In this document: piece after piece, positions 3,748 through 64,000 of the stretch
Position numbering within the stretch: position 1 is the first letter of the stretch
Layout of the letters: each line of letters opens with the position of its first letter
Assembly (NCBI GenBank): GCA_950097015.1
Contig: CATNEN010000031.1
Location: 248,001-312,000, forward strand
DNA: 64,000 nucleotides
Direction of reading: 5' to 3'
Origin: Macrostomum hystrix
Lineage: Eukaryota; Animalia; Platyhelminthes
Notes under the pieces: model-generated
What the model was told of the DNA's origin: nothing
The model's database searches: none
What the model saw: the letters and a program-made list of their open reading frames with translations, nothing else
Program-made: the position numbers and the translations under genes

Positions 3748-4437
3748 ATGGATCGTCTGGCTGCACTAGAAAAAATTCAGGTGAAGCAGAAGGTGGAGCT
3801 CATTGAGGCGGTGACAGGCTTTGAGACGAATAATGAGTATGAAATCAAAGACGGCGCTGGAGTGACTTTCCTCAAGGCCAAAGAAGACACAGGCCTTTGC
3901 GGCCGCATGTGCTGTGGTCCGCACCGCGCCTTTACTATCAACATCACCGATTCCAATGGCCGGAATGTGATCCGCGTCGTGCGCGACTACAAGTGCTTTT
4001 TCATCGGACAGTGTTGCAGCTGCTGTAGCTGCTGTCGGGACAGTGTAACAGTGGAAGCGCCACAGGGCAACGTCGTCGGATACGTGCTTCAGCAGTGCAG
4101 CGCGTGCAACGCTAACTTTACTGTAAGAGACTCGCATGGCATGGTTGTACTGCACCTAAAGGGACCCTGCTATTGCGGTTGCCGTTGTCCAGGACAAAAG
4201 TATACCTTTCGTATGATGTCCGCTGATGAGACCCAAGAGGTCGGTCGGCTGCACAAGGAGTGGGCGGGCTTCGCAAAAGAGATTCTAACCGATGCTGACA
4301 CGTTTCTTCTCGAGGTACCACAGGACATGGCAGTGGAAACCAAGGCGACTTTGATTGCAGCTGTGCTGCTAATTGACTTCATGTTTTTTGAGGACAACAG
4401 TGGCAAGAACAAAGTCGCCAGCACGCATCATCATTAA
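3748..4437 (+). CDS. PLSCR: Phospholipid scramblase family protein, intronless
   Basis: MDRLAALEKIQVKQKVELIEAVTGFETNNEYEIK...AKEDTGLCGRMCCGPHRAF...Cys-rich cluster...KEWAGFAKEILTDADTFLLEVPQDMAVETKATLIAAVLLIDFMFFE matches the scramblase family pattern. First ATG at 3748; AATAAA at 4686. Confidence 0.93.
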   Translation: MDRLAALEKIQVKQKVELIEAVTGFETNNEYEIKDGAGVTFLKAKEDTGLCGRMCCGPHRAFTINITDSNGRNVIRVVRDYKCFFIGQCCSCCSCCRDSVTVEAPQGNVVGYVLQQCSACNANFTVRDSHGMVVLHLKGPCYCGCRCPGQKYTFRMMSADETQEVGRLHKEWAGFAKEILTDADTFLLEVPQDMAVETKATLIAAVLLIDFMFFEDNSGKNKVASTHHH

Positions 4438-4794
4438 GAGTGCTCTTCTGAGAACATTGGTCGATAAACTGTAAATGGGATTTTTACTCGACCGAAATAT
4501 TTATTATTGTGTCGATTTTTATAGCTTATGAACTGTCTGTTAAGAATAACATTCAGAATTGTTGTCCAATCTTGACTTGCAGCATAAATCACAACACAAC
4601 AAATATAGCTACCATTATTTTTAGGTTCTGCAAGTGACAGGAAAAAATCACTTTAACAAAGCTAGTTTTTCTACTAAGAATTTTCAATAAACAACATGTC
4701 TATTCACAGCCGCTCCATTAAACGAAGGCTCATATTGCATGACAATAGGCATTCAAACTTGCACTGACCTATCTCGTATATTCTTGCACTGACC

Positions 4795-6214
4795 CGCCTC
4801 ATCTGGGCCAGTGCCATGAGCATCCAGAAAAACCTGGAGGCGCTTTATAGGGTGCAGGGCAGAGCCTGTCGCATGACGCTGGGCGCCCCACCCTCCACTC
4901 CCTTTGAAGGCATGAACGCTTTCCTCAACGCTACACCCATTGACATTTTTGTTAAGGGGGAAGCGGCAAAGTCCACCCGTCGTCTCCTTGATGCGGGTGT
5001 ATCCTTCCAGAATTCGCGAGCCTTCTCGAAGCGCTCCCTTCTGCCCCACTCTGACCTCTGCCTGAAAACTCTGGGCGAGTGCGGAGGGCTCACCATCCTT
5101 TCGGACGGGGCCCCGGCCACTTTACTCCGGAGCCACAGGTACAAAGTCAGCATCTTCCCTCGTAATGAGGTAAAGGACTGCTGGGATGACCCCGCAGTCC
5201 ACTGTTACACTGACGGCTCCCTGATGAACGGTAAATCGGGATTCGGGGTGTGCGTCGCCTCGGGTGGCGAGGTCCTCTGGACCCACTCCCAACACTGTGG
5301 CAAGAGCTCAAGCGTTTTCCAAAACGAAATGCTCGCCATCAGCTTCTGTGCGGCTGAGCTGCGCCAGAGGCAGCTGGCTGGTCGGAGGATCTTTTTTCAC
5401 TCCGACAGTCAAGCAGCCCTCAAGGCCCTCAGTCGCTGCACCTCTCGCTCCAGAACCACCTTGGACTGCAACACCCAGTTAAACGGTTTGGCGCAGTCTA
5501 ACAAGGTGGAGCTGATGTGGATCCCTGGGCACGCCGGGCTCACAGGGAATGAGATGGCGGACGAGCTTGCAAAGGCTGGAGCAGCCAGCTCCCTGATGGG
5601 CCCGGGCCCGGAATCCCCGATCCCCGCCTCCGTTGTCAACTCCAGCATCAACCACTGGATGGAGACCCAGCACCGGAGGAGGTGGTCCAGCACCCTGAAC
5701 TGTCGCCAGTCCAGGGCTGCGGTGCCAACCCCCTCTAGTAACCTGCGTAAGGCCTTACTCAGGCTAAACCGCAGAGACCTGAGAGCAGTCACCATGGCCC
5801 TTTCGGGACATGGCTGCTTCACCAGACACCGCTACCTCCAAGGCCACGTGCCTGAGGAAACGTGTCCTCTCTGCTGCTCCGGCCGTGAAAACGCCGAGCA
5901 TTTCATTTGCCACTGCCCGGCCTTCACCCGGGCTAGGCTAAAACACCTCGGGCCGGCACCGACTCTTGCCGAAGCCTGCTCGCCCGAGAACATCCCTCAG
6001 CTCACCCACTTCCTCCGGGATACCGGCCGAGCTGATTTCTTCCCAGCCTATGGCGAGGAAGATCGCGCGGCGGAACCGACCGACGGACCACCCTGAGCGG
6101 CACCGCCTCGCTGGAGGCCGTCTGGCTGCCAGGGGTTAGCGATATGGGCGGCAACAGCCGCCTCCTCGCTGCGTCCGTCATGGAGGCCCCCTGCCGCTAA
6201 GTCAAGTAAGTCAA
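4795..6214 (+). mobile_element. 5'-truncated LINE (R1/Loa/I group) with RT thumb, RNase H, C-terminal CCHC finger and a (TAAGTCAAG)2 tail
   Basis: Uninterrupted ORF 4816-6096: [40 protein letters not shown] (RNase H) and [18 protein letters not shown]. The 3' UTR ends in taagtcaagtaagtcaag. Confidence 0.93.
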
Positions 6215-7098
6215 GCGGCCGCATGTGCTGTGGTCCGCACCGCGCCTTTACTATCAACATCACCGATTCCAATGGCCGGAATGTGATCCGCGTCGTGCGC
6301 GACTACAAGTGCTTTTTCATCGGACAGTGTTGCAGCTGCTGTAGCTGCTGTCGGGACAGTGTAACAGTGGAAGCGCCACAGGGCAACGTCGTCGGATACG
6401 TGCTTCAGCAGTGCAGCGCGTGCAACGCTAACTTTACTGTAAGAGACTCGCATGGCATGGTTGTACTGCACCTAAAGGGACCCTGCTATTGCGGTTGCCG
6501 TTGTCCAGGACAAAAGTATACCTTTCGTATGATGTCCGCTGATGAGACCCAAGAGGTCGGTCGGCTGCACAAGGAGTGGGCGGGCTTCGCAAAAGAGATT
6601 CTAACCGATGCTGACACGTTTCTTCTCGAGGTACCACAGGACATGGCAGTGGAAACCAAGGCGACTTTGATTGCAGCTGTGCTGCTAATTGACTTCATGT
6701 TTTTTGAGGACAACAGTGGCAAGAACAAAGTCGCCAGCACGCATCATCATTAAGAGTGCTCTTCTGAGAACATTGGTCGATAAACTGTAAATGGGATTTT
6801 TACTCGACCGAAATATTTATTATTGTGTCGATTTTTATAGCTTATGAACTGTCTGTTAAGAATAACATTCAGAATTGTTGTCCAATCTTGACTTGCAGCA
6901 TAAATCACAACACAACAAATATAGCTACCATTATTTTTAGGTTCTGCAAGTGACAGGAAAAAATCACTTTAACAAAGCTAGTTTTTCTACTAAGAATTTT
7001 CAATAAACAACATGTCTATTCACAGCCGCTCCATTAAACGAAGGCTCATATTGCATGACAATAGGCATTCAAACTTGCACTGACCTATCTCGTATATT
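6215..7098 (+). repeat. 884-bp direct duplication of 3899-4782 (3' part of the scramblase gene plus 3' UTR), flanking the LINE
   Basis: Both ends show a constant offset of 2316 bp (gcggccgcatg... to ...atctcgtatatt). No differences were seen by eye. Confidence 0.95.
6223..6753 (+). pseudogene. N-terminally truncated duplicate scramblase ORF (176 aa)
   Basis: Identical to the C-terminal 176 aa of the upstream scramblase and begins at an internal in-frame ATG. Confidence 0.85.
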
Positions 7099-7527: not shown

Positions 7528-7800
7528 GAGAGTCTATGTCGAAGTGCCAGTTGAAACTGACCAAAAGACATTTGTGAGTTCTATAGAAAGGGGAAAGACA
7601 AATTATGTTTTGGACAGTCTGTTCTGGACGTCCTGCTGCTCACCTTGCAGGGTCCGCTAAGGCGGACATGGACTGCTTTTTTGCAACGCAAAGCGCCAGA
7701 CGAGGCAAACGGGCCGAACTTTGTCCGCTCGCTGGTAGACAAACGCGCACCATCTGCTGCTGCCCCCATATGACATTGGCGCTTGCATTGGTTTTGATTT

Positions 7801-10325
7801 TGTTGTGTGTGTGTATTCGGTAAGCGTATACAGCGTACAGCGTACCCACTCTAGGCCTTAGAAACTTCACGACCTTCTGCTCATCTGTCTGGCTCTCCGC
7901 TCCTTCGATGCCGTATTCCAGTCGCACCGCGTCCCACAGGCAGCACTCCAGCCAGTGGTCCTTGCTCTAGGCCGCTCCGCAGGCACCGCACTCCTTGACG
8001 GGGTCCAGTCCGACCTTCTGCCTCCAGTAGGCCGTCCATTTGCAGTGGCCGCTGCGGAGTTGGGCTAGCGTCACCTCCACTATCCGACTCTGCTAAAAAA
8101 CGCTCGATCCTCCTGCTATAAACTTTCGGAAGTCTGCCTTCGCTCATCGGTGCGCTAGGCAGTCTCAGAATGCGGCTCTTCGCCCGATCCCATTCCAGGG
8201 GCACCTGTACCTGATGCAGCCCCGTGGCCGTCTTAGCTTCCTGGTCCGCCAGCTCATTTCCCTCAATCCCCACGTGCCCGGGGGATCCATTGCAGTCTGA
8301 TCTTGCACCACTCTTGCACCACTTGCAAGACGATGTGGTAGAGGCAGGTCGACCGGTTTATAGCCTCACTGCGGAGTTTCATCAAACTCCGCAGTGAGGA
8401 CGACTTGCTATCCGTGAGGATTAGGGCGCTTTTCGGGCGGGTCTCTTCGATGACGTCCAACGCCAGCTCCAAAGCTCCGATCTCCGCTGACATCGAGCTA
8501 TACAGACTGCCTGAAGCAGCTCTGCGGACAATCCTGCTGCGATCTCCTTCGGCCACGCACGTCGTTCCGCCGTCCTTCTGGCCCTCGCCCACAGATCCAT
8601 CCGTGCATCTCGCATCTCGACTGGGTTCCTGGCTTCGATTGTGCGGGCGGCTTACTCCGCCAGTCCGTCGTCACCTTTCTTCCCGCCGTCGATTAGCTTG
8701 GTCGCGATCTTGACTCCATCCAGGGCTAGCCTTCTCCATGGTTGATGCCTCTTCTCGCTAAAGCTTTGTCGCGGGTGCTCCGATGTGTTGAGGCAGGCTT
8801 CGCGCTCTCTCAATCCCTTGTTCGCGGCCAGCCTGCGGTTTCCGTGGTGTTCACTACACTTCCTGAGGAGGTTCTCGTTGGTCGCGCACCGCCTTCTCTC
8901 AGGTAACCATGGCGCGTTTACGAGCCTGGATGCGAATCGGTTCAACGTCCGTTTCCAGGTACACTGCCTAGACCGGAGAGGAGCGCACGAGCCCAGCGAT
9001 GGTCCTTCAGGCATTCTGGTTGGACGCGCTCGATCTTCTCCAGTCCGGAGTTCGCTAACCATGGCAGCCAGGCGGATGCGCTGTACCATACACGCAGTAC
9101 CATGCGCAGTACCTTACAGCTCTCCACGATGCTCTTGTACACCATGAGGAGCTCTTCCGTTCGCCAGCCCCAGCTGATGTTGGCCAACGCACGAATGGCT
9201 CTCTGGCGCCTTCTCTGGCGCACGAATGGCTCATCTTCATCTTGGTGATAACCGTGTCCACATGCGCCGCAAGATCAGGCGTCCATGGATAAAGACTCAG
9301 AGATACTTTAGCTGTCGCACTGTAGCAATGGTCTTGCCGGCGATACTCAGGTCCGCATCCGCCGCATTGTCCGTAGGAGACCTACTAAGGATGCACGCCT
9401 CATATTTTTGGGTTAAATTATATTTTTAGTCCTTTCGCCCAGCGACCAATCTTGTCCAACCTCTCTGCATCTGCTCCGTGACTTCCAAATTCGACATCCG
9501 GTTCCTCCAGGTCGCTGCACCCGTTGGGGTAAAGCAGGAACAACGCCGGGGAGCTTACCGCCCCTGTGGGAGGCCTTCCTGGAGTCTGCGCCACTTGTTG
9601 ATTCCATCACCGGTTCTGACTCTAGCCTGCCGTCCTTCGAGAAAGCTGGCGAACCACGGAACGATCGGACTAGGGGTTCTCTCCTCCATCGGCCTGTCAA
9701 TGAGCTTCACTCTCCAGACCCTCTCGTAGGCCTTCGTGCAGGCGAGGGAGACGGCGATGAATTTCGAGGTTTTCGCTCCTCCCGTCCTGGATAAATTGCA
9801 ATAGCCGGATAACCTGCTCTTCGGTGCTACGGCAGTTCTCGTTAGCCCGCTACACGCTCCGTGGAAGTTTTTTTGGCACTCTTGGCAGCTGATCGAGGTG
9901 TATCCTGAGGTGATCTTTTTGTTACACTGGCCGCACGGACCAGGATTTTCCTCGACGTCCCCCGAGGTGAGCAACACGTCTTTAACGCGCCAGCAGTCCC
10001 GGTGGAGCTCGAGCGCGCTGTACTTCGCCATCCCTTCTCTCGTCTTCTCTCTTAGAAGGTCGTCCGTAGCTGTCCAGATTTTCGTCATTCCCACCCCTTT
10101 TTCTCCCAGGTGGAAGTCCAGCTGTCATGCAGGTCCGCCTCTGCCGTCAGCGCAGTACAGCTTGTTATACTGCGCAGGACCTGGCTCTGCACTGTCTGCA
10201 GGCGTGACCAGTGCAAGTCGTCCAGTTTCGGTGCCCACTCCGGGGCGGCATACTCTAGCACTGGCCCGAAAGCGATTTCGTGAACTTGCCCTCAAGCGCG
10301 CGATTTGACGCTCCCCCCAGGTATA
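7801..10325 (-). mobile_element. Decayed, internally deleted Ingi-like LINE: 2A peptide, partial PHD finger, RT remnants, RNase H, (CA)n tail
   Basis: LLTSGDVEENPGP (9974-9936) is followed by CGQC..CQECQKNFHGAC. RT pieces: AVSLACTKAYERVW, WFASFLEGRQARVR, GLPQG. Thumb: LANISWGWRTEELLMVYKS. RNase H: SAEIGALELAL, ILTDSKS, LQWIP/GHVGIEGNELADQEAK. Many frameshifts and stops. Confidence 0.85.
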
Positions 10326-13088: not shown

Positions 13089-15229
13089 ATGGCTGCTGAG
13101 TCGAGTCCCAGTCTGCGGGAGCGCGAGTTTGTCCCGCAGTTGCGCCACTTCCCTCCAACGTCCGGCTTCACGCCGCGGCCGGCGGAGCGGAAGGCGGACT
13201 TCCGCAAGCCGGTGACGTCACTCAGCTTGGAGTGCGAGCACCGGAAGAGGATCGAAGAAGACGTGCCCTACACCTACTTCCCCTCGGTGGCAGCCCGGCT
13301 GTGGACGGAGGCCAGCAAGTTCCCGCCGCCGTTTCCTGACCGTCCAGACGACAACTACAGCTTCAACGTGTGGCGCAACTTCAAGAACGCCTTCGGCCTG
13401 CAGCTGCCGCCAAATAGGCCGGAGCCGGAGCAGCATGAGCTGCTGGCAGCCTGCTATCCGGTCAACGTGCCCAAGCCGAGCCACATGAGTGAGCACACAT
13501 TCGCCAGGTGAGCAGTCATTGACTACGATTGATCTGACCGCTGACAGCAGCTTGCCATGGATGGGCACCGCATAGGCTTTCGAATGACTATTCAATAAGG
13601 CAAGCTGTCATGTTACTTTTCCGTACCGTTGACTTACATCGACAAAAACAACAACAAAGTGTAACGGGGCTTTTTATTAATAACTGATCTCACTGCTATT
13701 ATCACGATTTAGTAGATACGTTCCACACTGGCGTTCCTTAAATGGGCCGGTTAACTCTTCAATCTGGTAGCGTCTGTATTGCACGAGCGGTAGATTAGGC
13801 AACTGCATGCATTTCCAGTCAATTAGGCGTCCCCGAGATTAGAGTTTTGCAGCTCCCTCTTATAGTAATATTCTTGGTATAAATCTGAGTATAATTCTTA
13901 GTATAGTTCTTAGTATAATTCTTAGTATAGTTCTTAGTATAGTTCTTATTATAGTTCTTAGTATAGTTCTTAGTATAGTTCTTAGTATAGTTCTTAGTAT
14001 AGTTCTTAGTATAGTTCTTAGTATAGTTCTTAGTATAGTTCTTAGTATGGTTCTTAGTATAGTTCTTAGTATAGTTCTTAGTATGGTTCTTAGTATAGTT
14101 CTTAGTATAGTTCTTAGTATAGTTCTTAGTATAGTTCTTAGTATAGTTCTTAGTATAGTTCTTAGTATAGTTCTTAGTATAGTTCTTAGTATAGTTCTTA
14201 GTATAGTTCTTAGTATAGTTCTTAGTATAGTTCTTAGTATAGTTCTTAGTATAGTTCTTAGTATAGTTCTTAGTATAGTTCTTAGTATAGTTCTTAGTAT
14301 AGTTCTTAGTATAGTTCTTAGTATAGTTCTTAGTATAGTTCTTAGTATAGTTCTTAGTATAGTTCTTAGTATAGTTCTTAGTATAGTTCTTAGTATGGTT
14401 CTGAGTATATTTCTCAATATTCTCCTCTCTTATAAAATGAATAAGGCAATGAATAAATGAGGCACTCTATTATATCTTGAACACACTTCTGATTCTGACT
14501 CTGAAAGCACAGAATGCAAGCGCTTTCGTCGTAGACGAACCTGCTTTATTTTTCTCTCTACAAGTTGCGGCTATATATACACAGGCAAATTAGTGTTTGT
14601 TTAAATCATCAATTTTACAAAATAATATTCATACAGTATGCATTTAAAACAAAGAAATTACTACTACACTACTATTGGTACGGTGAAAATTAAAACAAAA
14701 ATATTGATTTTCGCGCATTTTTAACTTCTTAGATTTTATGAATATTTTTATAAAATTTATATACAAAAACGACAGGTACGTGGAGACCTCCAATCTATTT
14801 AAAGACGAGGCCAAGCGGCGCATTGTGATCCGGCAGTTGCGCGAGGAGGACAGGCAGCACAAGCGGCTGGCTCAGCTGGCCGCGGCTCGCGACCCGCCGC
14901 TTGACTCGCGCGGCTTCATCCTGCCGCCGGAGGGCTACAAGCGCTACGCTCCGCTGATGCTGACGCCTGGCCTGGCTGGCGAAGCCGCCGATCAGGACGC
15001 CGCCGCCGCCGCCGACGCAGGTCCGCTGGCCGGCTCCCTGGCCGACGACGTCCAAGTGGACATGTTCGGCAACATTGTTCGCCGGCGCCGCCGGCCGCGG
15101 CTGTGGAAGCTGAGCTACCGGAGCAGCAATCCAAAGTATCAGGAGGCAATGCGCTACTCAACCGCTGTGAGGGAGGGCCCTCAGCAGGAACGGTTTCCCA
15201 CGCTGATGCCGCCACCGGCGGCTCGATGA
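13089..15229 (+). CDS. TEX52: TEX52-like protein; exons 13089-13507 and 14776-15229
   Basis: Phase-2 intron (AG|gtgag ... acag|G) restores FAR-YVET. Motifs FPPPFPDRPDDNYSFNVWR, PKPSHMSEHTF and ARDPPLDSRGFILPPEGYKRY resemble my recollection of vertebrate TEX52 (FPTQPDRPYDSNVWR, PPPSWMGQNSF, ARAPPLDAQGNIQPP). Needs a database search. Confidence 0.7.
13872..14400. repeat. 12-bp minisatellite (TAGTTCTTAGTA)n inside the TEX52-like intron
   Basis: More than 40 near-perfect tandem copies. Confidence 0.97.
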
Positions 15230-16133
15230 GCGAGGATAAACAAGGTTAACTATGGACAATCGTAGATAACTGTGGATAATCGTGGATAACTAGGGATTAA
15301 TCGTGGATAACTTAGGGATAATCATGGATAGCTAGGGATAATTGTGGATAATCATTATTAACTTGGGGATAATTCTGAAAACAACTAGGTATGCTTCTGA
15401 ATAACTACGTTTAATCAAATATATATCTGTTTGTTATTTCAAGTGTGTATAGAATATAGTAGACAATGCTGAGGATGTAAGTTAGAGAACGCTGCATGTT
15501 TATCAGCTCTGTGCTCCAAATTTTTGTTACAAGTACGGTGACGAATAAATTTTGTTTTCAATCTGTCACTTTCCACTTTACGATAGGTTAGCAGAAATAG
15601 ACTCAATTGCTTAATAAAATTGTAAATAGACTACCAGAATCTTCACAAAAAAGATATTTTTTACGAAAATTTGTAAGACAAAATATTACTTGCGAACTTT
15701 CATTCCAGCTTTCGTTCATGCAGCATTACTTACTCGTAAAAATATAACGGTTTTAATACTTAAATATGACAATTCAAACTCAACTGTCTCTAAGATTTTC
15801 TTATTGTCACATCTCACTTGACTCGATAAGTGCTAGTTTTCGCTTTGCTTGTGAATTCTTTTGAATTAGTTGATTTCTCATCGGTATAGTGTTACAACAT
15901 AGAATGCCTTTTAATGGTTTATTATGTCATGTGAGGCCACATATAAAAAATATCGTACCCCTTTTTGTTATATAAATTCTTAATGAGACTTTGATTGTCT
16001 TCGTTACTACTGTTAGTAGGCCAAGTAAAAGCAAATAGTTTTCAAGATTTTTTTAAGACGAACTACAATCCGTAGGCCTACTAATGACTTTTCTGCCGTG
16101 ATTTACAAGATAAATCAGTAATCCGACATTCCT

Positions 16134-16772
16134 CAATCCACTAGATTGGTTAGCAATCCATTCTGATTACTCAATCCACCAGATAGATAGATTAGCAATC
16201 CATTCTGATTACTCAATCCACCAGATAGATAGATTAGCAATCCATTCTGATTACTCAATCCACCAGATAGATAGATTAGCAATCCATTCTGATTACTCAA
16301 TCCACCAGATAGATAGATTAGCAATCCATTCTGATTACTCAATCCACTAGATAGATTAGCAATCCATTCTGATTACTCAATCCACTAGATAGATTAGCAA
16401 TGGATTGCTAATCTATTACTATATTTCTATATATTTCTATATAATCTATTTCTGATTACTCAATCCACTAGATAGATTAGCAATCCATTCTGATTACTCA
16501 ATCCAACAGATAGATAGATTAGCAATCCATTCTGATTACTCAATCCACCAGATAGATAGATTAGCAATCCATTCTGATTACCCAATCCACCAGATAGATA
16601 GATTAGCAATCCATTCTGATTACCCAATCCACCAGATAGATAGATTAGCAATCCATTCTGATTACTCAATCCACCAGATAGATAGATTAGCAATCCATTC
16701 TGATTACTCAATCCACCAGATAGATTAGCAATCCATTCTGATTACTCAATCCACCAGATAGATTAGCAATCC
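16134..16772. repeat. ~42-bp minisatellite (GATTAGCAATCCATTCTGATTACTCAATCCACCAGATAGATA) with 38-bp variants
   Basis: Tandem copies, interrupted at 16400-16450. Confidence 0.95.
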
Positions 16773-17842
16773 AGTCCATTCCTCAGTCCGCTAGAATAGA
16801 CTAGCAATGCAAATATCAATTGCCCTACACAGAAAAGTCGATGTACTTTTAGCAAGCGTCACGGCTGCAAGAATGGCAGCAAGCTCAGCTCTGTTGGGAC
16901 AATGAAGCTTCACCTTGTGTAAGGTGAGAATTGCTGTCAGTAAATGCCTCCCAGCCCACTTCAGCGTCAAAGAAGATACACAACAGACGACACTGACAAG
17001 GGGAACATGATAGCACTGGCCTGGAAACCCGATAAGTAGGAGAGCACAGTTGTAGCCCTGAAGCTGGCTGCCGATTCTCACCTAAGCCGCAAGAAAATCT
17101 AAACTCAAGCTGTCAATCAACCCTGGCTTGTCAATGCCATTACTGCTGGTATAAGGCAACGCTTTCTACAGGCAAGTGTCGGAAAAATTGTCACCTGCTA
17201 CTCAAAGTGCTGGGAAAAACAAGCAACGGAAGCCACGAACATCTAGTGGGATTAATTCCTCCCCCCCAATGGGATCTTTATTCCTAAATCCAGATTTATC
17301 TATCTGCCCGATAACTATTGATTACTGACGGTATTGAGGAGCACAGAACCACTCTTGTCTGATTAGTGATTGCCTGGCAACCGCAGAGCATTGCGTGTTG
17401 TCACCTGGTCGCCTAGCCTACATAGGCAAGTATCGCTGTCACAATTTTGTCATAATTACAACGTAGATTACAAAACCTAGGTATCGAAGCAATCACCAAG
17501 AGGTCGAGAGTTCGAATCTGGGCCAAAACGGAAAACAATTAATTGCCCATTGCTTCAGTTTAGAACCAGTTATAAAATGGGTGTCAGAATTAACTTTGAA
17601 CAAAACATTGTGTGAGTGTCACGGCCCCACATAATGATTTGAAAGCGTTCCGCCACTCATAAATCACTTTTTCATTAGCCTGCAGAGGCGACAGCTTGGC
17701 GTGAAGCAGAATGGCATTGCTGATAATCGCCTTAATTTAAGCACAAATTCCGCGATTTGGCATTGGGGATTATATATTTAGCTCTCTTTAGAGCACTTTG
17801 AAACTTTATAGCTGCAACGGTTTGAGCTCCCCTCAACTAGCC

Positions 17843-18440
17843 TCCCTTCAGATCATGAAGGCAGCTCCCCTCAGGTCATGAAGGCAGCTCCCCTCAGGTC
17901 ATGAAGGCAGCTCCCCTCAGGTCATCAAGGCAGCTCCCCTCAGGTCATGAAGGCAGCTCCCCTCAGGTCATGAAGGCAGCTCCCCTCAGGTCACGAAGGC
18001 AGCTCCCCTCAGGTCATGAAGGCAGCTCTCCTCAGGTCATGAAGGCAGCTCCCCTCAGATCATGAAGACAGCTCCCCTCAGGTCATGAAGGCAGCTCCCC
18101 TCAGGTCATGAAGGCAGCTCCCCTCAGGTCAAGAAGGCAGCTCTCCTCAGGTCATGAAGGCAGCTCCCCTCAGGTCATGAAGGCAGCTCCCCTCAGGTCA
18201 TGAAGGCAGCTCCCTCAGGTCATGAAGGCAGCTCCCCTCAGGTCATGAAGGCAGCTCCCCTCAGGTCACGAAGGCAGCTCCCCTCAGGTCATGAAGGCAG
18301 CTCTCCTCAGGTCATGAAGGCAGCTCCCCTCAGATCATGAAGGCAGCTCCCCTCAGGTCATGAAGGCAGCTCCCCTCAGGTCAAGAAGGCAGCTCTCCTC
18401 AGGTCATGAAGGCAGCTCCCCTCACTCCCCTCAGGTCACG
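17843..18440. repeat. 23-bp minisatellite (TCCCCTCAGGTCATGAAGGCAGC)n
   Basis: About 25 tandem copies. Confidence 0.96.
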
Positions 18441-19511
18441 AAATCGAGCTAGCAGCTCATTGAAGCCAGCAATGCTCCACTTTCCGACAAAAGAGACTAC
18501 TGAGAAATGCATAGAGAGCAGTGAAGAATTCGCATTCCTCACGCAGAGTAGCAAGTACCAATGCTGCTATTCACTATAGTTGAGTGGCCAGTTAGTAAAT
18601 AATAGACTCCAATAAGTCTCAAGCGGGTACCGACAAGCAGAGTTGCAGGATCTCGGCACAACTCGCAATATCCTTGCCGAGAGGAATTCTCGAGAGCCTA
18701 GAGCCTATTTGTCAAATCGACTTGAGAACAATGCTCTGTGCTGTATATACTCAAATTCAAACTCAAGTAATGCTAAATTGAAATTCTGCATTCACTTCCA
18801 ATTTATACTTGTAGTAGTATATATTTTCATCTCGCAATATGCGGCACCTGAGGTCTAACAGCTTGAAAGTTTCACTACGTCAATCAAACAGTGGGCTGTT
18901 TGCTGGAACTAATTAATGCCAAATGACAGACACGTGTTAGTCTGACAGTGCGACAGGTGACAGAAAGTTTATCTAAGTAAGATTTCCTAATTAAAGAATA
19001 ACATTGGCCCACATGATTGAGTGGCATTGCCTTCAGCCTAACAACAAGCAGAAACATATTAGACAGAAATTCAATCAATATTTTATTGAATATTGGAATT
19101 AATTTTTATCAAATTCGGGTGAAATCCTCAGGCTAACGGCTTTCTTGACAAACCGGACCCTGTCCTCATTTCTCAATGCGACAGAAACAAGAGGCCGTTG
19201 CTGGCTAATGATTGTGCTCAGACATTTCAGACATGCCGCCGGGTTCCATAGGATAAGGGATGAAATTACGGGTCCAACAAGGCTGGCCAGACGTCAACGC
19301 ATGAGAGATGAGCCGGGACAAGCCAAGTAGGAAATTTTCCCCAATCGGCTGTCGTGTTTCTCATTTTTTCGTCGGCTAATAATATCCCAGCCTCACGAGG
19401 ACGCAACGTGGGAGGATATACTTAGCTGGATGGGATCACTAAAGGCGATGTTGTATCGAATTGGCGCCATAGCAATATCGATACTTAGAATATCCAACTG
19501 CCAAACTAACG

Positions 19512-20455
19512 GCTCCCCTCAGGTCATGAAGGTAGCTTTCCTCAGATCATCAAGGCAGCTCTCCTCAGGTCATGAAGGCAGCTTTCCTCAGATCATCAAG
19601 GCAGCTCTCCTCAGGTCATGAAGGCAGCTTTCCTCAGATCATCAAGGCAGCTCTCCTCAGGTCATGAAGGTAGCTTTCCTCAGGTCATGAAGGTAGCTTT
19701 CCTCAGGTCATGAAGGTAGCTCTCCTCAGGTCATGAAGGTAGCTCTCCTCAGGTCATGAAGGCAGCTCTCCTCAGGTCATGAAGGCAGCTCTCCTCAGGT
19801 CATGAAGGCAGCTCTCCTCAGGTCATGAAGGCAGCTCTCCTCAGGTCATGAAGGCAGCTTTCCTCAGGTCATGAAGGTAGCTCTCCTCAGGTCATGAAGG
19901 TAGCTCTCCTCAGGTCATGAAGGTAGCTCTCCTCAGGTCATGAAGGCAGCTCTCCTCAGGTCATGAAGGCAGCTCTCCTCAGGTCATGAAGGTAGCTCTC
20001 CTCAGGTCATGAAGGTAGCTTTCCTCAGATCATCAAGGCAGCTCTCCTCAGGTCATGAAGGTAGCTTTCCTCAGGTCATGAAGCTAGCTCTCCTCAGGTC
20101 ATGAAGGTAGCTTTCCTCAGATCATCAAGGCAGCTCTCCTCAGGTCATGAAGGTAGCTTTCCTCATATCATGAACACAGGTCCCTCATATCATGAACACA
20201 GGTCCCCCAAATCATGAACACAGGTCCCTCAGATCATGAAGACAAGTCCCTCAAGTCATGAAGACAGGTCCCTCAGATCATGAACACAGGTCCCCCAAAT
20301 CATGAACACAGGTCCCTCAGATCATGAAGACAAGTCCCTCAAGTCATGAAGACAGGTCCCTCAAGTCATGAAGACAGGTCCCTCAAGTCCTGAAGACAGG
20401 TCCCTCAAGTCATGAAGACAGGTCCCTCAAGTCATAAAGACAGGTCCCTCAGGTC
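19512..20455. repeat. Second array of the 23-bp minisatellite, grading into a 22-bp variant (CCCTCAAGTCATGAAGACAGGT)
   Basis: Tandem copies; the unit changes at ~20165. Confidence 0.95.
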
Positions 20456-24035: not shown

Positions 24036-24414
24036 TCTTTAAAGCAATATATATTATGCCCTATGTCCCAATGTCCGATCAATTCAGGCTCTCTAAAGTG
24101 CCCTTCATGCCGAGAACAATAGGGGTGACAGATCATCGTCTCTTGTTTACTGACTTGCATCTTTGAGAATTTGAGAGCCACAGAATTTTCCCAGCCAGAA
24201 AGATTATAAATCTAGGCTTAAGAATCTATGGTGGCGGGGTTCCCTGCAATATCCCTTCGCATTGCGCGTTGACTAATTTTACTATGAGCAGTGCTCCGCC
24301 CTGCCGTGAAGGCGTCAACCCGAACCAATAATTTATGGGGCCTTTGCTGCTACTCAGAGGAGTAGCCAAAAACTACATTTCACAGCTCAATCGTGAGACC
24401 AGCTCAAGCTCACA

Positions 24415-24870
24415 GCTCAAGCCGAGCTGTCCTGACATCTCCGAGTCTGTCAGCCTCATCTCCAAGTCGAGCTGTACTGACACCTCCAAGTCTATCAGCC
24501 CCATTTCCAAGCCGAGCTGTCCTGACACCTCCGAGTCTATCAGCCTCATTTCCAAGACGAGCTGTCCTGACACCTCCGAGTCTATCAGACTCATCTCCAA
24601 GTCGAGCTGTCCTGACACCGCCGAGTCTGTCAGCCTCATTTCCAAGCCGAGCTGTCCTGACACCTCCGAGTCTATCAGCCCCATCTCTAAGTCGAGCTGT
24701 CCGGACACCTCCGAGTCTATCAGACCCATCTCCAAGTCGAGCTGTCCTGACACCTCCGAGTCTATCAGCCCCATCTTCAAGCCGAGCTGTCCTGACACCT
24801 CCGAGTCTATCAGCCCCATCTTCAAGCCGAGCTGTCCTGACACCTCCGAGTCTGCCAGTCTGTCCTGACA
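24415..24870. repeat. 45-bp minisatellite (CCGAGCTGTCCTGACACCTCCGAGTCTATCAGCCCCATCTTCAAG)
   Basis: About 10 diverged tandem copies. Confidence 0.93.
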
Positions 24871-25694
24871 CTTCCGAGTCTCTGAGAAGTGTTGGAAAAT
24901 TCAATATTTTTCGCCCAATTGACCTACGAGTACTAACTGAAACGGTCAAAAGATGAAAACAAGCCAGCACTTTTGCCAGATATTTTGATATTTTCCACAT
25001 TCCGCTCGTCTCGCTTCGTCGCACAAACAGCTGCAGCAGCCGGGCAGTGGATTAAGAGAGGCCCGCTAAATCCCCTGGGCGGGGAGTCTGGTCTGTGCTT
25101 GAGCTCGGTGGAATAATCCGCCCAGCAACTCCGTGTCTGGTGTCACATTTCAGCCAGTAGATAAAGGTCTCAGCTTCGAAGCTGTCATAAAATCCGTTTG
25201 CCGATCCTTTACGCGCCTCTCACGTGAAGCGTCACGTGTCACGTGATGCATTAAAACTAACAAAGCGTATGTGTGTCTTTAAACTTTTAAAAACCTTAAA
25301 CTGTGAATTTCTAATTTAGAATGTTATAAAACAAAGCTTTAAACTGAGCTATCACCCTATTTAAACTTCGAAAATTGCTGTTATAAATATCGAACTCACA
25401 AAGCAGCTACTGTAGCAAACAGACCTGAGATGCATGGGATGGGATGTGAATTTGATCTAGAATATTCTTTCCATTGCTTGGGATTGCACCAGACTGCCCG
25501 ATCTTATTATCTCCGTGCCCTCCAAATTCGATCCCAGTTTGAGCCAGTTTGAGCGCTTCCATAAAGCATCATGAACTAAATACAGTGTGTGCCAGCCGCC
25601 ACCGGCTCTTTGATGTGGCCCGAGGAGAAGCCTCATTAACCAATGCTCCCTCATGGCAGCAAGCTCATCAATTCGCTTGAACTAACTGCCTATT

Positions 25695-27756
25695 TAGTGC
25701 AACTGCTGTCTAATATGCTATCATCATCATCCAATTAGTGCAACTGCTGTCTAATATGCTATCATCATTATCCAATTAGTGCAACTGCTGTCTAATATGC
25801 TATTATCATTATCCAATTAGTGCAACTGCTGTCTAATATGCTATCATCATCATCCAATTAGTGCAACTGCTGTCTAATATGCTATCATCATCATCCAATT
25901 AGTGCAACTGCTGTCTAATATGCTATCATCATTATCCAATTAGTGCAACTGCTGTCTAATATGCTATCATCATTATCCAATTAGTGCAACTGCTGTCTAA
26001 TATGCTATCATCATCATCCAATTAGTGCAACTGCTGTCTAATATGCTATCATCATCATCCAACTAGTGCAACTGCTGTCTAATATGCTATCATCATCATC
26101 CAATTAGTGCAACTGCTGTCTAATATGCTATCATCATTATCCAATTAGTGCAACTGCTGTCTAATATGCTATCATCATTATCCAATTAGTGCAACTGCTG
26201 TCTAATATGCTATCATCATCATCCAATTAGTGCAACTGCTGTCTAATATGCTATCATCATTATCCAATTAGTGCAACTGCTGTCTAATATGCTATTATCA
26301 TTATCCAATTAGTGCAACTGCTGTCTAATATGCTATCATCATTATCCAATTAGTGCAACTGCTGTCTAATATGCTATCATCATTATCCAATTAGTGCAAC
26401 TGCTGTCTAATATGCTATCATCATCATCCAACTAGTGCAACTGCTGTCTAATATGCTATCATCATCATCCAACTAGTGCAACTGCTGTCTAATATGCTAT
26501 CATCATCATCCAACTAGTGCAACTGCTGTCTAATATGCTATCATCATCATCCAACTAGTGCAACTGCTGTCTAATATGCTATCATCATCATCCAACTAGT
26601 GCAACTGCTGTCTAATATGCTATCATCATCATCCAACTAGTGCAACTGCTGTCTAATATGCTATCATCATCATCCAATTAGTGCAACTGCTGTCTAATAT
26701 GCTATCATCATTATCCAATTAGTGCAACTGCTGTCTAATATGCTATCATCATTATCCAATTAGTGCAACTGCTGTCTAATATGCTATCATCATCATCCAA
26801 TTAGTGCAACTGCTGTCTAATATGCTATCATCATCCAATTAGTGCAACTGCTGTCTAATATGCTATCATCATCATCCAATTAGTGCAACTGCTGTCTAAT
26901 ATGCTATCATCATTATCCAATTAGTGCAACTGCTGTCTAATATGCTATTATCATTATCCAATTAGTGCAACTGCTGTCTAATATGCTATCATCATTATCC
27001 AATTAGTGCAACTGCTGTCTAATATGCTATCATCATTATCCAATTAGTGCAACTGCTGTCTAATATGCTATCATCATTATCCAATTAGTGCAACTGCTGT
27101 CTAATATGCTATCATCATCATCCAATTAGTGCAACTGCTGTCTAATATGCTATCATCATTATCCAATTAGTGCAACTGCTGTCTAATATGCTATCATCAT
27201 CATCCAATTAGTGCAACTGCTGTCTAATATGCTATCATCATTATCCAATTAGTGCAACTGCTGTCTAATATGCTATTATCATTATCCAATTAGTGCAACT
27301 GCTGTCTAATATGCTATTATCATTATCCAATAAGTGCAACTGTTGTCTAATATGCTATTATCATTATCCAATTAGTGCAACTGCTGTCTAATATGCTATT
27401 ATCATTATCCAATTAGTGCAACTGCTGTCTAATATGCTATTATCATTATCCAATTAGTGCAACTGCTGTCTAATATGCTATCATCATCATCCAACTAGTG
27501 CAACTGCTGTCTAATATGCTATCATCATCATCCAACTAGTGCAACTGCTGTCTAATATGCTATCATCATCATCCAACTAGTGCAACTGCTGTCTAATATG
27601 CTATCATCATTATCCAATTAGTGCAACTGCTGTCTAATATGCTATCATCATCATCCAACTAGTGCAACTGCTGTCTAATATGCTATCATCATCATCCAAC
27701 TAGTGCAACTGCTGTCTAATATGCTATCATCATCATCCAACTAGTGCAACTGCTGT
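25695..27756. repeat. 41-bp satellite (TAGTGCAACTGCTGTCTAATATGCTATCATCATCATCCAAT)n
   Basis: About 50 near-identical tandem copies with no spacers. Confidence 0.98.
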
Positions 27757-28205
27757 ATAACAGCTGATTCCCATTTGTCTAAGTAGTGCAACTGTTGTTT
27801 TAAAGTGCCTTGGATCTCAAATCTGTGAGACGGATATGTGATTACGAACTGAAACACTCCAGGTGCTTTCTGAGTCCCCTCAAGCAGGCATTCTCGCACC
27901 GCTTACCCCGAGGGGATCATTTTCCCCAATGCATGCTTACACAAGATCAGGAATTTATTGATTAAAGGGACTGAATTTCATTTATATATTTGAGATCGTG
28001 CTTGGCTTTCCTTAGAAAAATCAATAATGTTATCTATTAGAGTTTAAGCGTGTGGCCTTTTTCTTTATAGCTTGTCTCTATGGCTTTAAATTGTGGGAGA
28101 AAAATCCACTTTTCTGGGTCCAAGGTCCAGGGTTCGAATCAGATATCCATTGCAGGTAGATAATTATAAAACGCCGGAAACTTGTCAGCATTTAAAACAC
28201 ATTAA

Positions 28206-50709: not shown

Positions 50710-51065
50710 ACCTGCCATCCCAGATTGATCTGCCATCCTAGATCCCAGATTGATCTGCCATCCTAGATCCCAGATTGATCTGCCATCTTAGATCCCAGAT
50801 TGATCTGCCATCCTAGATCCCAGATTGATCTGCCATCTTAGATCCCAGATTGATCTGCCATCCTAGATCCCAGATTGATCTGCCATCCTAGATCCCAGAT
50901 TGATCTGCCATCCTAGATCCCAGATTGATCTGCCATCCTAGATCCCAGATTGATCTGCCATCCTAGATCCCAGATTGATCTGCCATCCTAGATCCCAGAT
51001 TGATCTGCCATCCTAGATCCCAGATTGATCTGCCATCCTAGATCCCAGATTGATCTGCCATCCTT
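50710..51065. repeat. 25-bp minisatellite (GATCCCAGATTGATCTGCCATCCTA)n
   Basis: About 14 tandem copies. Confidence 0.96.
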
Positions 51066-51829
51066 GATCCCAAGATCCTACCCAAGGTCTCCGCTCCAGC
51101 TCCGCCCTCATGCAGATGTCGTCAGTGTGTCCTTGATTCAAGACAGCTTGCGTTTCTTTAATTTTTTTTCATTTCCGCTGTTTCTCAATATTATACCCAC
51201 CCTGATGTTATTGTTGTTGCTTCTAACTGTTTTTTGCTTTGGCAACTAGCAATCCAGTGACTGTTATTAGTAATTTTCAAGCAAACGTAGGCTTTTAGGG
51301 TTTTGGACTCGTGCTGCCCAACAATGGCCAATGTGTGTTTTTTCAAATTCGTTTTGAGGATTAAGTAGCAAGAGATTAAACGCTTTTTTGCTATTAATTT
51401 ACTGAGCTGCTAAGAAAATTCACAACGTATTTTAAAGGTATCAGAAACCTATAACCATCAGTGACTAAATTAAAAGCGAAATATTACAATCAATACTGTC
51501 TTTACATTCGATCTTATTTCTAGTTACATATGTTCAACATCTTGATTGCATTGTTCAATAACCAGACCTGTAACCCAAACAAAGAAGTATTCTTTTCGTG
51601 TTTTCGTCCTCTTTTCTTCCTCGGTGACAAGTGCTTCACATTGCGATTCCTCTGTAAGTCAACTGCTTTATTAGCTAACCGATTGTCCGTGTCTGTCTGA
51701 TGCGAGTATCTCATCGTTTGCTGTTTGCTGTGCTAGTTGAACTTTGATTAACTTGCGCTGGACTTAATGTTAACCTGCCCTGTCTTGCACACTGTATCAT
51801 TCGACATAATCAGGTGGGTTAGACAGTTA

Positions 51830-54644: not shown

Positions 54645-55630
54645 TCCATCCTAGATCCCAGATTGATCTGCCATCCTAGATCCCAGATTGATCTGCCATC
54701 CTAGATCCCAGATTGATCTGACATCCTATGTCTCCCATCTCCCATCCTAGATTCTGTCCTTAAGTCCCAATCTGCCATCCTAGATTCTGTCCCCAAGTCC
54801 CAATCTGCCATCCTAGATTCTGTCCCCAAGTCCCAATCTGCCATCCTAGATTCTGCCCTTAAGTCCCAATCTGCCATCCTAGGTCCTATTACCCATCCTA
54901 GATTTTGTTCTTAAGTCCTAATCTGCCATCCTTGGTCTCCCATGTCTCATCCGAGATTCTGTCCTTAAGTCCTAATCTGCCATCCTTGGTCTCCCATGCC
55001 TCATCCGAGATTCTGTCCTTAAATCCTAATCTGCCATCCTTGGTCTCCCATGCCTCATCCGAGATTCTGTCCTTAAATCCTAATCTGCCATCCTTGGTCT
55101 CCCATGCCTCATCCGAGATTCTGTCCTTAAGTCCTAATCTGCCATCCTTGGTCTCCCATGCCTCATCCGAGATTCTGTCCTTAAGTCCTAATCTGCCATC
55201 CTTGGTCTCCCATGTCTCATCCGAGATTCTGTCCTTAAGTCCTAATCTGCCATCCTTGGTCTCCCATGTCTCATCCGAGATTCTGTCCTTAAGTCCTAAT
55301 CTGCCATCCTTGGTCTCCCATGCCTCATCCGAGATTCTGTCCTTAAATCCTAATCTGCCATCCTTGGTCTCCCATGTCTCATCCGAGATTCTGTCCTTAA
55401 GTCCTAATCTGCCATCCTTGGTCTCCCATGTCTCATCCGAGATTCTGTCCTTAAGTCCTAATCTGCCATCCTTGGTCTCCCATGCCTCATCCGAGATTCT
55501 GTCCTTAAATCCTAATCTGCCATCCTTGGTCTCCCATGCCTCATCCGAGATTCTGTCCTTAAATCCTAATCTGCCATCCTTGGTCTCCCATGCCTCATCC
55601 GAGATTCTGTCCTTAAGTCCTAATCTGCCA
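54645..55630. repeat. Composite minisatellite with 25-bp, then 33-bp, then 54-bp units
   Basis: 25-mer x3; 33-mer x4 (starts at 54746, 54779, 54812, 54845); 54-mer x~13. Confidence 0.94.
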
Positions 55631-55729
55631 TTCTAGATTCCTTGCTCCCAACATGCCATCATTGATGCCCAGGTTCCAATCTTTCATCGTGTATTCCAAG
55701 ATTCTGTATTGTTTTCAGTCCAGCTCGCC

Positions 55730-57885: not shown

Positions 57886-59211
57886 GCACTGACAATATTC
57901 GGCCTGACCGCTGTTGAGCTGGCACTCTGTCTAGCCGGCTGCCTCAGTCGTCTAGCCCTTCGAAGCTGGCTCACTCCACAGTCAGTGCGCGCCTGGTCCA
58001 GCTCACCTGTTGAGACCTGGACTGCGGTGCGCGAATACCTGGCCCTTCGTCGGGCTGGCGTTGACCCCTACGATGGCAGCGTGCTGCACCTGCCGCCGCT
58101 GTCTCTGCGCCTGATGCTGGCCGCCGACAGTCTGCTGGGCGGTGGCAACGGAGAGCGCGCCTGGCCAGTCCTGCTAGCTTTGGAACTGGCGGGCTGCCTG
58201 GCGCTGAAGCGGCTTCTGCGCGAGTTCGGCGCCTACTCCCTGCGGCGACAGGCGGACAACGTCGCCGATTACAGCTCAGCCAGCACCTCCATGCTGCTGT
58301 CTAGCGATAGTCTTCGCCGACTCCGGCTGCCAGTGCTGGCCGTCTACTGGCTCAATCCCTACGGCCTGGCGGATTCAGTTGCCGAGTCGACTGCGCCGCT
58401 TAGCAACCTGCTTATTCTGCTCTGCCTGGCCGAACTCTGCCGCGGCCGGGTCGCCTTCGCCGGAGCACTCTGCGCCGGCGCAGCCTACCACAGCCTGTAC
58501 CCGGCCTGTCTCATTGTGCCAGTCTGCCTGGCTGGCCCGGTTCGTCCGGCCCTTCTGGCGTTCTGTGGCACCCTGGCCAGCCTATTAGCGGCCTCCTTCA
58601 CCCTGTCTGGCGGCAGCTGGGCATTCCTGCACTCAGTGTACGCATTCCACGCTTTGGCGCCGGACCACACGCCCGCCTTCAGCCTGTCCTGGTATCTGTT
58701 CTGCGAAGCTTTCGACCATTTTCGCGGCCTATTTCAGGCGTTGTTCCAAATGAATCTTCTGTGCGCGGTGGCACCGCTGGCCATCAGATTCCGCACTGAT
58801 CCCTGCTTCCTGGCTGTAATTTTCTGGGCCTACACCGCCTCATTCAAGCCCTACTGCTGCGTGTCGGAGCAGGCTGCTGTTGCCTGTCTGTTTGTCATGT
58901 ACGGCCAGCTGCACTCCCACATGCGCCGAGCTCTGGTGGCCATCATCCTCCTGATTGTGGCCTTCGTGCTGGCTCCCATCATGCACCACCTGTGGCTGTA
59001 TCCGGGCAGTGCCAATTCCAATTTCTACTTTGCCATCTCGCTGCTGCATTGCACTGCAATGGCCCTGCTGCTCTACATGTTCTGCATCGCCTATCTGAAG
59101 CGGGAATTCCTGCTGCGCCACGGAGCCGAGCCTCTGAAATTTAGCGACGGAACTGAGGCTAAAATTTTGCTGCAGGCGCCGACAGCAAAGCTGCTGTTCA
59201 TTGGAAAATGA
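57886..59211 (+). CDS. PIGU: GPI transamidase component PIG-U (CDC91/GAB1 family), no internal introns, no genomic ATG for the N-terminus
   Basis: SSPVETWTAVRE..L...GVDPYDGSVLHLPPL, YWLNPY, DHTPAFSLSWYLFCEAFDHFRGLF, HHLWLYPGSANSNFYFAISL, LKREFLLRHG..DGTEAKILL. Confidence 0.93.
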   Translation, partial: ALTIFGLTAVELALCLAGCLSRLALRSWLTPQSVRAWSSSPVETWTAVREYLALRRAGVDPYDGSVLHLPPLSLRLMLAADSLLGGGNGERAWPVLLALELAGCLALKRLLREFGAYSLRRQADNVADYSSASTSMLLSSDSLRRLRLPVLAVYWLNPYGLADSVAESTAPLSNLLILLCLAELCRGRVAFAGALCAGAAYHSLYPACLIVPVCLAGPVRPALLAFCGTLASLLAASFTLSGGSWAFLHSVYAFHALAPDHTPAFSLSWYLFCEAFDHFRGLFQALFQMNLLCAVAPLAIRFRTDPCFLAVIFWAYTASFKPYCCVSEQAAVACLFVMYGQLHSHMRRALVAIILLIVAFVLAPIMHHLWLYPGSANSNFYFAISLLHCTAMALLLYMFCIAYLKREFLLRHGAEPLKFSDGTEAKILLQAPTAKLLFIGK

Positions 59212-59212
59212 T

Positions 59213-62699: not shown

Positions 62700-63445
62700 T
62701 TACCTGTCTCTTTGTCTGCCCGTATCTTTACCTGTCACTTTGTCTGCCCGTATCTTTACCTGTCACTTTGTCTGCCCGTATCTTTACCTGTCTCTTTGTC
62801 TGCCCGTATCTTTACCTGTCACTTTGTCTGCCCGTATCTTTACCTGTCTCATTGTCTGCCCGTATCTTTACCTGTCTCTTTGTCTGCCCGTATCTTTACC
62901 TGTCTCTTTGTCTGCCCGTATCTTTACCTGTCTCTTTGTCTGCCCGTATCTTTACCTGTCTCATTGTCTGCCCGTATCTTTACCTGTCTCTTTGTCTGCC
63001 CGTATCTTTACCTGTCTCTTTGTCTGCCCGTATCTTTACCTGTCTCTTTGTCTGCCCGTATCTTTACCTGTCTCTTTGTCTGCCCGTATCTTTACCTGTC
63101 ACTTTGTCTGCCCGTATCTTTACCTGTCACTTTGTCTGCCCGTATCTTTACCTGTCACTTTGTCTGCCCGTATCTTTACCTGTCTCTTTGTCTGCCCGTA
63201 TCTTTACCTGTCTCTTTGTCTGCCCGTATCTTTACCTGTCTCATTGTCTGCCCGTATCTTTACCTGTCTCTTTGTCTGCCCGTATCTTTACCTGTCTCTT
63301 TGTCTGCCCGTATCTTTACCTGTCTCTTTGTCTGCCCGTATCTTTACCTGTCACTTTGTCTGCCCGTATCTTTACCTGTCTCTTTGTCTGCCCGGATCTT
63401 TACCTGTCTCTTTGTCTGCCCGTATCTTTACCTGTCACTTTGTCT
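62700..63445. repeat. 28-bp minisatellite (TGTCTGCCCGTATCTTTACCTGTCTCTT)n
   Basis: About 26 tandem copies. Confidence 0.96.
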
Positions 63446-63469
63446 CAGTTTCAAGTCATCCTTCCGTCT

Positions 63470-64000
63470 GTCTCCTACCTGTCTGTCCGTCTCCCAACTG
63501 TCCGTATCTTACCTGTCCGTCTCCTACCTGTCCGTCTCCTACAAGTCCGTCTCCTACCTGTCCGTCTCCTACCTGTCCGTCTCCTACCTGTCCGTCTCCT
63601 AGCTGTCCGTCTCCTAGCTGTCCATCTCCTAGCTATCCGTCTCCTACCTGTATGCCTCCTAGCTGTCCGTCTCCTACCTGTCTGTCTCCTAGCTGTCTGT
63701 CTCCTACCTGTATGCCTCCGAGCTGTCCGTCTCCTACCTGTATGCCTCCTAGCTGTCCGTCTCCTACCTGTCCGTATCTTACCTGTCCGTCTCCTACCTG
63801 TATGCCTCCTAGCTGTCCGTCTCCTACCTGTCCGTATCTTACCTGTCCGTCTCCTACCTGTATGCCTCCTAGCTGTCCGTCTCCTACCTGTCCGTATCTT
63901 ACCTGTCCGTCTCCTACCTGTCCGCATCTAACCTGTCCGTCTCCTACCTGTCCGTCTCCTACCTGCCCATCTCCTGCCAGTCCTTATCTTACCTGTCCGC
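63470..64000. repeat. 15-bp minisatellite (CTGTCCGTCTCCTAC)n, continuing to the window edge
   Basis: Tandem copies with a few variant units. Confidence 0.95.

Follow-up and report, generated by a model that had tools for sequence, protein, structure and literature searches.

How did a truncated LINE in the flatworm Macrostomum hystrix come to lie between two identical copies of nearly a kilobase of host DNA, copies that include most of a protein-coding gene? The locus lies in a stretch of 64,000 nucleotides from a single contig, which was analyzed as a whole and is referred to here as the window; all positions without a contig name count from its first base. An earlier note on this DNA, made from the sequence alone, attributed the arrangement to one retrotransposition event that left a giant target-site duplication (TSD). 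We examined that reading through the repeats themselves, the family to which the LINE belongs, the two junctions of the insert, and the gene into which it went.

An 884-bp direct repeat on both sides of a LINE

Base-by-base comparison confirmed that positions 3899-4782 and 6215-7098, described previously as identical repeats around the LINE, agree over their full length (884 bp, 0 mismatches, 100% identity), and that identity drops at once beyond either end of the repeat. The two copies directly flank a 5'-truncated LINE on both sides, and both edges of the 884-bp segment are T/G sites, where the slash, here and below, marks a boundary between bases.

3899 to 4782, forward strand: copy A of the duplication, identical to 6215-7098; begins in codon 51 of a scramblase gene
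6215 to 7098, forward strand: copy B of the duplication, identical to 3899-4782; followed by native downstream sequence

A search of the whole 220-Mb assembly found the 884-bp unit in only two exact places, both of them at this locus. Beyond these it matches just one sequence, a paralogue with 72% identity on a different contig, and the same search with the 884-bp unit returned no second haplotype or leftover haplotig of the locus. The repeat is real, and chance is excluded as an explanation for it. Within the 64-kb window, self-BLAST gave no further long exact non-tandem repeat. Tandem arrays are numerous in the same self-comparison, and in a whole-window repeat scan a 45-bp satellite dominates the repeat content.

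The inserted LINE and its family

The insert consists of the following parts.

4796 to 6214, forward strand: 5'-truncated LINE, the 3'-terminal 1419 nt, shared at 99.7-99.9% identity by at least 39 copies elsewhere in the genome
About 5194 to 5583 (RNase H) and 6094 to 6096 (stop codon), forward strand: parts of the LINE, which also comprise a post-RT linker, a C-terminal CCHC region, and a 118-nt 3' UTR
6198 to 6215, forward strand: LINE 3' tail, (TAAGTCAAG)x2; its last G, at 6215, doubles as the start of copy B

A genome query with the 1432 bases between the repeats (4783 to 6214) yielded at least 658 first-look candidates, 40 of which were scored. At least 39 other copies match over exactly the segment from 4796 to the tail, at the identity listed above. 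Together with an RNase H domain in the window LINE (Pfam RNase_H, PF00075, E 1.6e-14), these matches bear out the previous description of the insert as a 5'-truncated LINE. Its ORF had also been called intact, and the reading frame is indeed open from 4796 to the stop codon at 6094-6096.

Truncation of the window LINE took place downstream of the RT: in one family copy (L006), an RVT_1 domain (E 1.4e-28) lies upstream of the part that is kept in the window. In 24 of 29 family copies, no stop interrupts the frame up to the limit of the compared DNA. In three copies (C1:3500868, C1:8722542, and C2:578938), the apurinic-type endonuclease domain PF03372 lies 1.76-2.37 kb upstream of the position equivalent to 4796, a placement made by match coordinates only, with the matches inside a 1238-aa open frame. 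By its domains, the family is an APE-RT-RNase H-CCHC LINE. The RT, the endonuclease, and the common 3' end of its copies, together with their variable 5' truncation and short TSDs, mark it as an APE-type non-LTR retrotransposon that is inserted by TPRT.

Family copies differ from one another by about 1.9 bases in 1419 (about 0.14%), and the window LINE carries two private substitutions, at 5869 and 6004. Family density is about one copy per 0.3 Mb. The family is abundant and very young.

The 3' junction at 6214/6215 is canonical, because the tail (TAAGTCAAG)x2 is present in all 29 compared family copies and the first flank base after it is G in 25 of these 29. The 1 nt of overlap noticed earlier, the G at 6215, has its counterpart in these G-starting flanks. 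The LINE joins the target at 3898/3899 (...CCTTT/GCGG...) exactly as other family members do.

Target-site duplication lengths across the family

A survey of TSD lengths in the family had been proposed as a check on the giant-TSD reading. Four of the 29 compared copies are truncated and readable (L015, L021, L019, and L008); L014 was left out, as it lies in satellite. Clean 12-bp TSDs were found in L015 and L021, the former with 3 additional bases at its 5' joint. The TSD of L019 measures 6 bp or less, and none is visible around L008. For six further copies, a genome search revealed no second nearby copy of the 3' flank, so these have no TSD of about 60 bp or more. The survey thus gives 12 bp for L015 and L021 and a long TSD (at least 60 bp) in 0 of 10 other family copies.

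There is no 12-bp TSD around the window LINE. The 884 bp found there are an outlier within a LINE family whose usual TSD is about 12 bp. In L015, L021, and the window alike, the TSD starts with G and is preceded by T.

The 5' junction and its 13-nt filler

At its 5' end the insert required a correction. The LINE had been taken to start at 4783, but LINE homology begins only at 4796, and all other copies match only from there. The 13 bases in between have a source in the target.

4758 to 4769, forward strand: target 12-mer CTTGCACTGACC, the source of the filler; copy A continues for another 13 nt beyond it
4783 to 4795, forward strand: filler of 13 nt, a second direct copy of the 12-mer CTTGCACTGACC followed by one C

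Where the window has the filler, other copies carry ...CTTACGCTG; the junction therefore reads ...GTCGCTTACGCTG/GCCTCATC in the other copies versus CTTGCACTGACCC/GCCTCATC in the window. The window contains the 12-mer at three positions only, 4758, 4783, and 7074 (in copy B, the counterpart of 4758), and the 2.9-kb 3' portions of 29 other LINE copies lack it. Its presence in the target and in none of these LINE portions shows that the target was its template. The alternative that the filler is LINE sequence was rejected, as its bases are present in no other copy.

The LINE 5' end is thus linked to target base 4782 via the filler, 12 nt of which are templated by 4758-4769, inside the terminal 25 nt of the duplication. 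Copied in direct orientation from no more than 25 nt away from the break, the filler is consistent with either template switching or alternative end joining on the exposed top strand. Microhomology that might explain the priming of the filler was sought at the junction, and none was convincing.

How the duplication arose

The repeat abuts both ends of the insert (the 5' end via the filler), and its left edge lies at the T/G position of the family, the presumed nick site. With the family-type 3' junction, the T/G left edge, the filler copied from the target, and the identity of the two copies, the single-event interpretation of the earlier note gains support: it is likely that one TPRT event, by a young APE-type LINE, made the 884-bp TSD.

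In such an event, the endonuclease would nick the bottom strand at 3898/3899, and reverse transcription would copy the final 1419 nt of the LINE RNA. The top strand would be broken after 4782, that is, 884 nt downstream as opposed to the usual distance of about 12 nt; this second break may have been a nick, some 0.9 kb away from the first. The 3' end of the cDNA would then copy 12 nt just inside the top-strand end before re-landing on the very end, and the two single-stranded stretches of 884 nt would be filled in. Candidates for the source of the distant break include the nuclease of the element itself, a stray nick, a repair or replication intermediate, and displacement in a transcribed gene.

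Between the repeats there are 0 differences, against 2 private changes in the LINE. If both private changes arose after insertion, about 2.5 differences between the repeats would be expected, and P(0) would be about 0.08. A value of this size is in keeping with a single origin, all the more if the source element already carried the changes or reverse transcription introduced them. Perfect identity would equally follow from an assembly or polishing artefact or from gene conversion. The finding of 0 of 10 long TSDs elsewhere in the family counts against the single-event reading to the extent that it makes the window case an exception. Transduction of 3' or 5' sequence was also considered as a source of the second copy and rejected: copy B ends where copy A ends and passes directly into unique flank, where neither a tail nor a second TSD is present.

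A variant of the single event replaces the distant nick with replication. Break-induced or fork-restart replication would repair the break primed by the LINE, and the LINE cDNA would become trapped at the junction. Such a route resembles a short tandem-duplication pathway and has been proposed for L1 (bioRxiv 10.1101/2024.12.14.628481). It would account for the templated 12-nt filler, which is typical of polymerase dissociation and re-priming, and unaided melting of 884 bp of duplex is hard to envisage. The end sequence, however, is equal under both routes, with nothing in the window that discriminates between them, and the canonical 3' junction shows that ordinary TPRT started the event; we consider repair by replication unlikely.

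The duplication might also have been created during assembly. If two haplotypes carried LINEs of this family in the same orientation, one at 3898/3899 and the other after the equivalent of 4782, an assembler that switched haplotypes inside the LINE would produce the observed structure; alternatively, the duplication might simply be false. The assembly was made with canu from long PacBio reads of a line with an inbreeding coefficient of about 0.998, separately assembled haplotypes needed purging, and the DNA came from pooled worms (PMC10468722). The abundance of the family (the at least 658 first-look candidates) would also favor an artefact, as would the T/G bases at both edges of the segment and the 100% identity of the repeats. 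However, the structure measures 3.2 kb in all, well inside single PacBio reads, and so highly inbred a line speaks against divergent haplotypes. At about one copy per 0.3 Mb, two insertions of the same family and orientation less than 0.9 kb apart on opposite haplotypes are improbable. The postulated downstream insertion would also be without a 12-bp TSD, there being no GTTATCTTGGTG before 4796, and the assembly holds no leftover haplotig of the locus. On balance, an assembly artefact seems quite unlikely.

Two separate events, namely an older tandem 884-bp duplication with a LINE inserted later exactly at its joint, or endonuclease-free capture of LINE cDNA at the breakpoint, are highly improbable: the joint of the tandem duplication (...TATATT/GCGGCC...) would itself be a T/G site, but the insertion would have to strike one exact position and leave no TSD, the repeats show no divergence even though the duplication must predate a LINE with 2 private changes, and the 3' junction is that of canonical TPRT and not a random cDNA end.

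The scramblase gene and its partial copy

Under the favored reading of a single TPRT event, the first nick fell inside a coding exon, whose gene is nevertheless found complete upstream of the LINE.

3748 to 4437, forward strand: phospholipid scramblase CDS, 229 codons plus stop, single exon, intact, upstream of the LINE
4686 to 4691 (AATAAA) and 4717 to 4722 (ATTAAA), forward strand: candidate poly(A) signals, located by pattern, upstream of the LINE; function presumed

The predicted protein contains a scramblase domain (Pfam PF03803, E 7.7e-62) that covers profile positions 14-221 in an uninterrupted frame. It aligns with Macrostomum lignano BOX15_Mlig026026g3 over 229 of 229 aa, at 96% identity and with no gaps.

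Of the 229 codons, numbers 51-229 are duplicated along with the stop and 345 nt of the 3' flank, in agreement with the previous statement that most of a gene had been duplicated. The duplication starts in codon 51 and extends beyond the stop and both candidate poly(A) signals. The scramblase gene upstream of the LINE is therefore intact, and on the single-event reading an insertion with its first nick in codon 51 left it undisrupted. Copy B retains a residual open frame (6223-6753, 176 aa) that is identical to the scramblase C-terminus. Copy B is a promoterless 3' fragment of the scramblase gene and remains as a partial duplicate. The earlier note had further expected a homeologous locus. No such locus applies here, because the polyploid species is M. 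lignano and this DNA is from M. hystrix.

Implications

LINE insertion with a near-kilobase target duplication is a rare type of event that has already been documented, and M. hystrix adds an example. Most known cases come from assays in human cell culture, from tumours, or from a single algal LINE. What distinguishes the present case is that it is a natural insertion in an animal, made by a family with 12-bp TSDs that has no second endonuclease, and that the gene it entered was visibly spared. A promoterless partial gene copy arose in a single step, and the templated 12-nt filler provides a small record of a cDNA end searching the broken top strand.

It is doubtful, though conceivable, that kilobase-scale target duplications recur upon LINE insertion in the M. 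hystrix germline rather than being represented by this one case. If they do recur, LINEs could enter coding exons and spare the gene while seeding partial gene duplicates, and the species would offer an in vivo counterpart of repair-deficient human cells or of Chlamydomonas Dualen. Should events of this kind be frequent in M. hystrix, exons and gene fragments would be duplicated through them, and they would also offer a handle on the positioning of second-strand cleavage. Second-strand cleavage is the least understood step of LINE integration.

Comparison with known large duplications

For human L1 in culture, 5'-truncated insertions have been linked with "extremely long TSDs" (PMC2912911), and recorded L1 TSD sizes range from 1 to 29,902 bp (PMC5717806). 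TSDs of more than 100 bp make up fewer than 10% of L1 events in HeLa cells, versus 57-91% in NER-deficient cells (PMC5223499). Large L1 TSDs in cultured cells are also attributed to Gilbert 2002/2005 and Symer 2002, as cited in PMC5223499, PMC2912911, and PMC5717806. The M. hystrix locus resembles these L1 cases in its 5'-truncated LINE, in a duplication of hundreds of bases to kilobases, and in the combination of an ordinary 3' junction with an irregular 5' junction. However, the human cases involve a marked element in a cell line, whereas the present one is a natural insertion in an animal assembly. The M. hystrix element, moreover, bears an RNase H and ends in a (TAAGTCAAG)n tail, in contrast to the poly(A) of L1, and unlike the repair-deficient human cells, M. 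hystrix has no known repair defect.

Bdelloid rotifer R9 elements, which are rDNA-specific LINEs, have a 126-bp TSD (Gladyshev and Arkhipova 2009, as cited in PMC9977147). They share with the present LINE a target duplication far above 20 bp. The R9 duplication is fixed at 126 bp and tied to one rDNA site, whereas the M. hystrix event is a one-off at a non-specific site and seven times longer.

In Chlamydomonas mutation-accumulation lines, natural de novo insertions of Dualen-4b_cRei show a median duplication of 900 bp (PMC9977147), and the M. hystrix case is likewise a natural LINE insertion with a duplication in the same size class. Long duplications accompany more than half of Dualen insertions, and the two endonucleases of the element have been proposed as the cause (PMC9977147). 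The M. hystrix family, in contrast, normally makes TSDs of about 12 bp and is without a restriction-like endonuclease domain after RNase H: RNase_H is the only Pfam domain found within the C-terminal 437 residues, of which about 65 follow the CCHC motif. A Dualen-type element was rejected on these grounds, namely no second endonuclease domain and a TSD of at least 60 bp in 0 of 10 other copies.

Finally, tandem duplications of 1-10 kb with L1 at the junction have been described in cancer genomes and L1-expressing clones, and are seen there as large TSDs (bioRxiv 10.1101/2024.12.14.628481). The locus studied here has the same architecture, a tandem duplication with a LINE at the junction. Those duplications are somatic, whereas the one in M. 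hystrix is found in an inbred laboratory line, is probably germline, and has left the gene preserved.

Repeats and Frames Around the Duplicated Segment

Copy B, the second of the two 884-bp direct repeats, is followed directly downstream by open frames that carry an RNase H-like motif ('...IEGNELADQEAK...'). These frames are part of another LINE, more decayed than the inserted element and on the opposite strand from it, so the scramblase gene lies in a transposon-rich stretch. The 64-kb window is also unusually rich in tandem arrays, whose periods range from roughly 12 to 45 bp; they include a 45-bp satellite of at least 60 units and a 41-bp array that is ~2.1 kb long.

Features of the window
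7581-8715, minus strand: open frames with the RNase H-like motif
13863-14414, 16128-16808, 17838-20455, 24413-24858, 25694-27798: tandem arrays
50717-51076, 51830-52356/56989-57832, 54716-55631, 59138-62000, 62700-63999: tandem arrays

Surroundings of Other Copies of the LINE Family

In two other genomic copies of the same LINE family, L007 (1-1499) and L020 (2921-3320), a multi-copy element starts at base 1 past the tail. The element in L007 measures ~90 nt and has dozens of copies; that in L020 measures ~160 nt and has 2922 first-look candidates. These elements may reflect LINE insertion beside or into SINE-like repeats, or head-to-tail composite insertions. Two further copies of the same LINE, L010 (8,808,362) and L011 (8,864,218), lie 56 kb apart on contig 25, and their satellite-like 3' flanks are almost alike, which suggests that the LINE was carried within a segmental duplication or array. 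The host DNA of L014, in which the LINE is truncated ~1.3 kb upstream, is a tandem array with a ~42-bp period; its 5' and 3' flanks have a 194-nt stretch in common, but offset, so the target-site duplication is unreadable. Near L006, a receptor frame lies ~0.5 kb downstream of the LINE 3' end.

Feature near L006
L006:17-1015, minus strand: rhodopsin-family 7TM receptor frame, 332 aa (PF00001)

Scramblase Paralogue

The M. hystrix assembly (G000) also contains a paralogous scramblase sequence, with 70-72% DNA identity to the duplicated 884-bp segment.

Paralogous locus
Contig 7, 5,803,225-5,803,713: paralogous scramblase sequence

Its counterpart is probably the second of the M. lignano-type scramblases (P0002, 59% protein identity).
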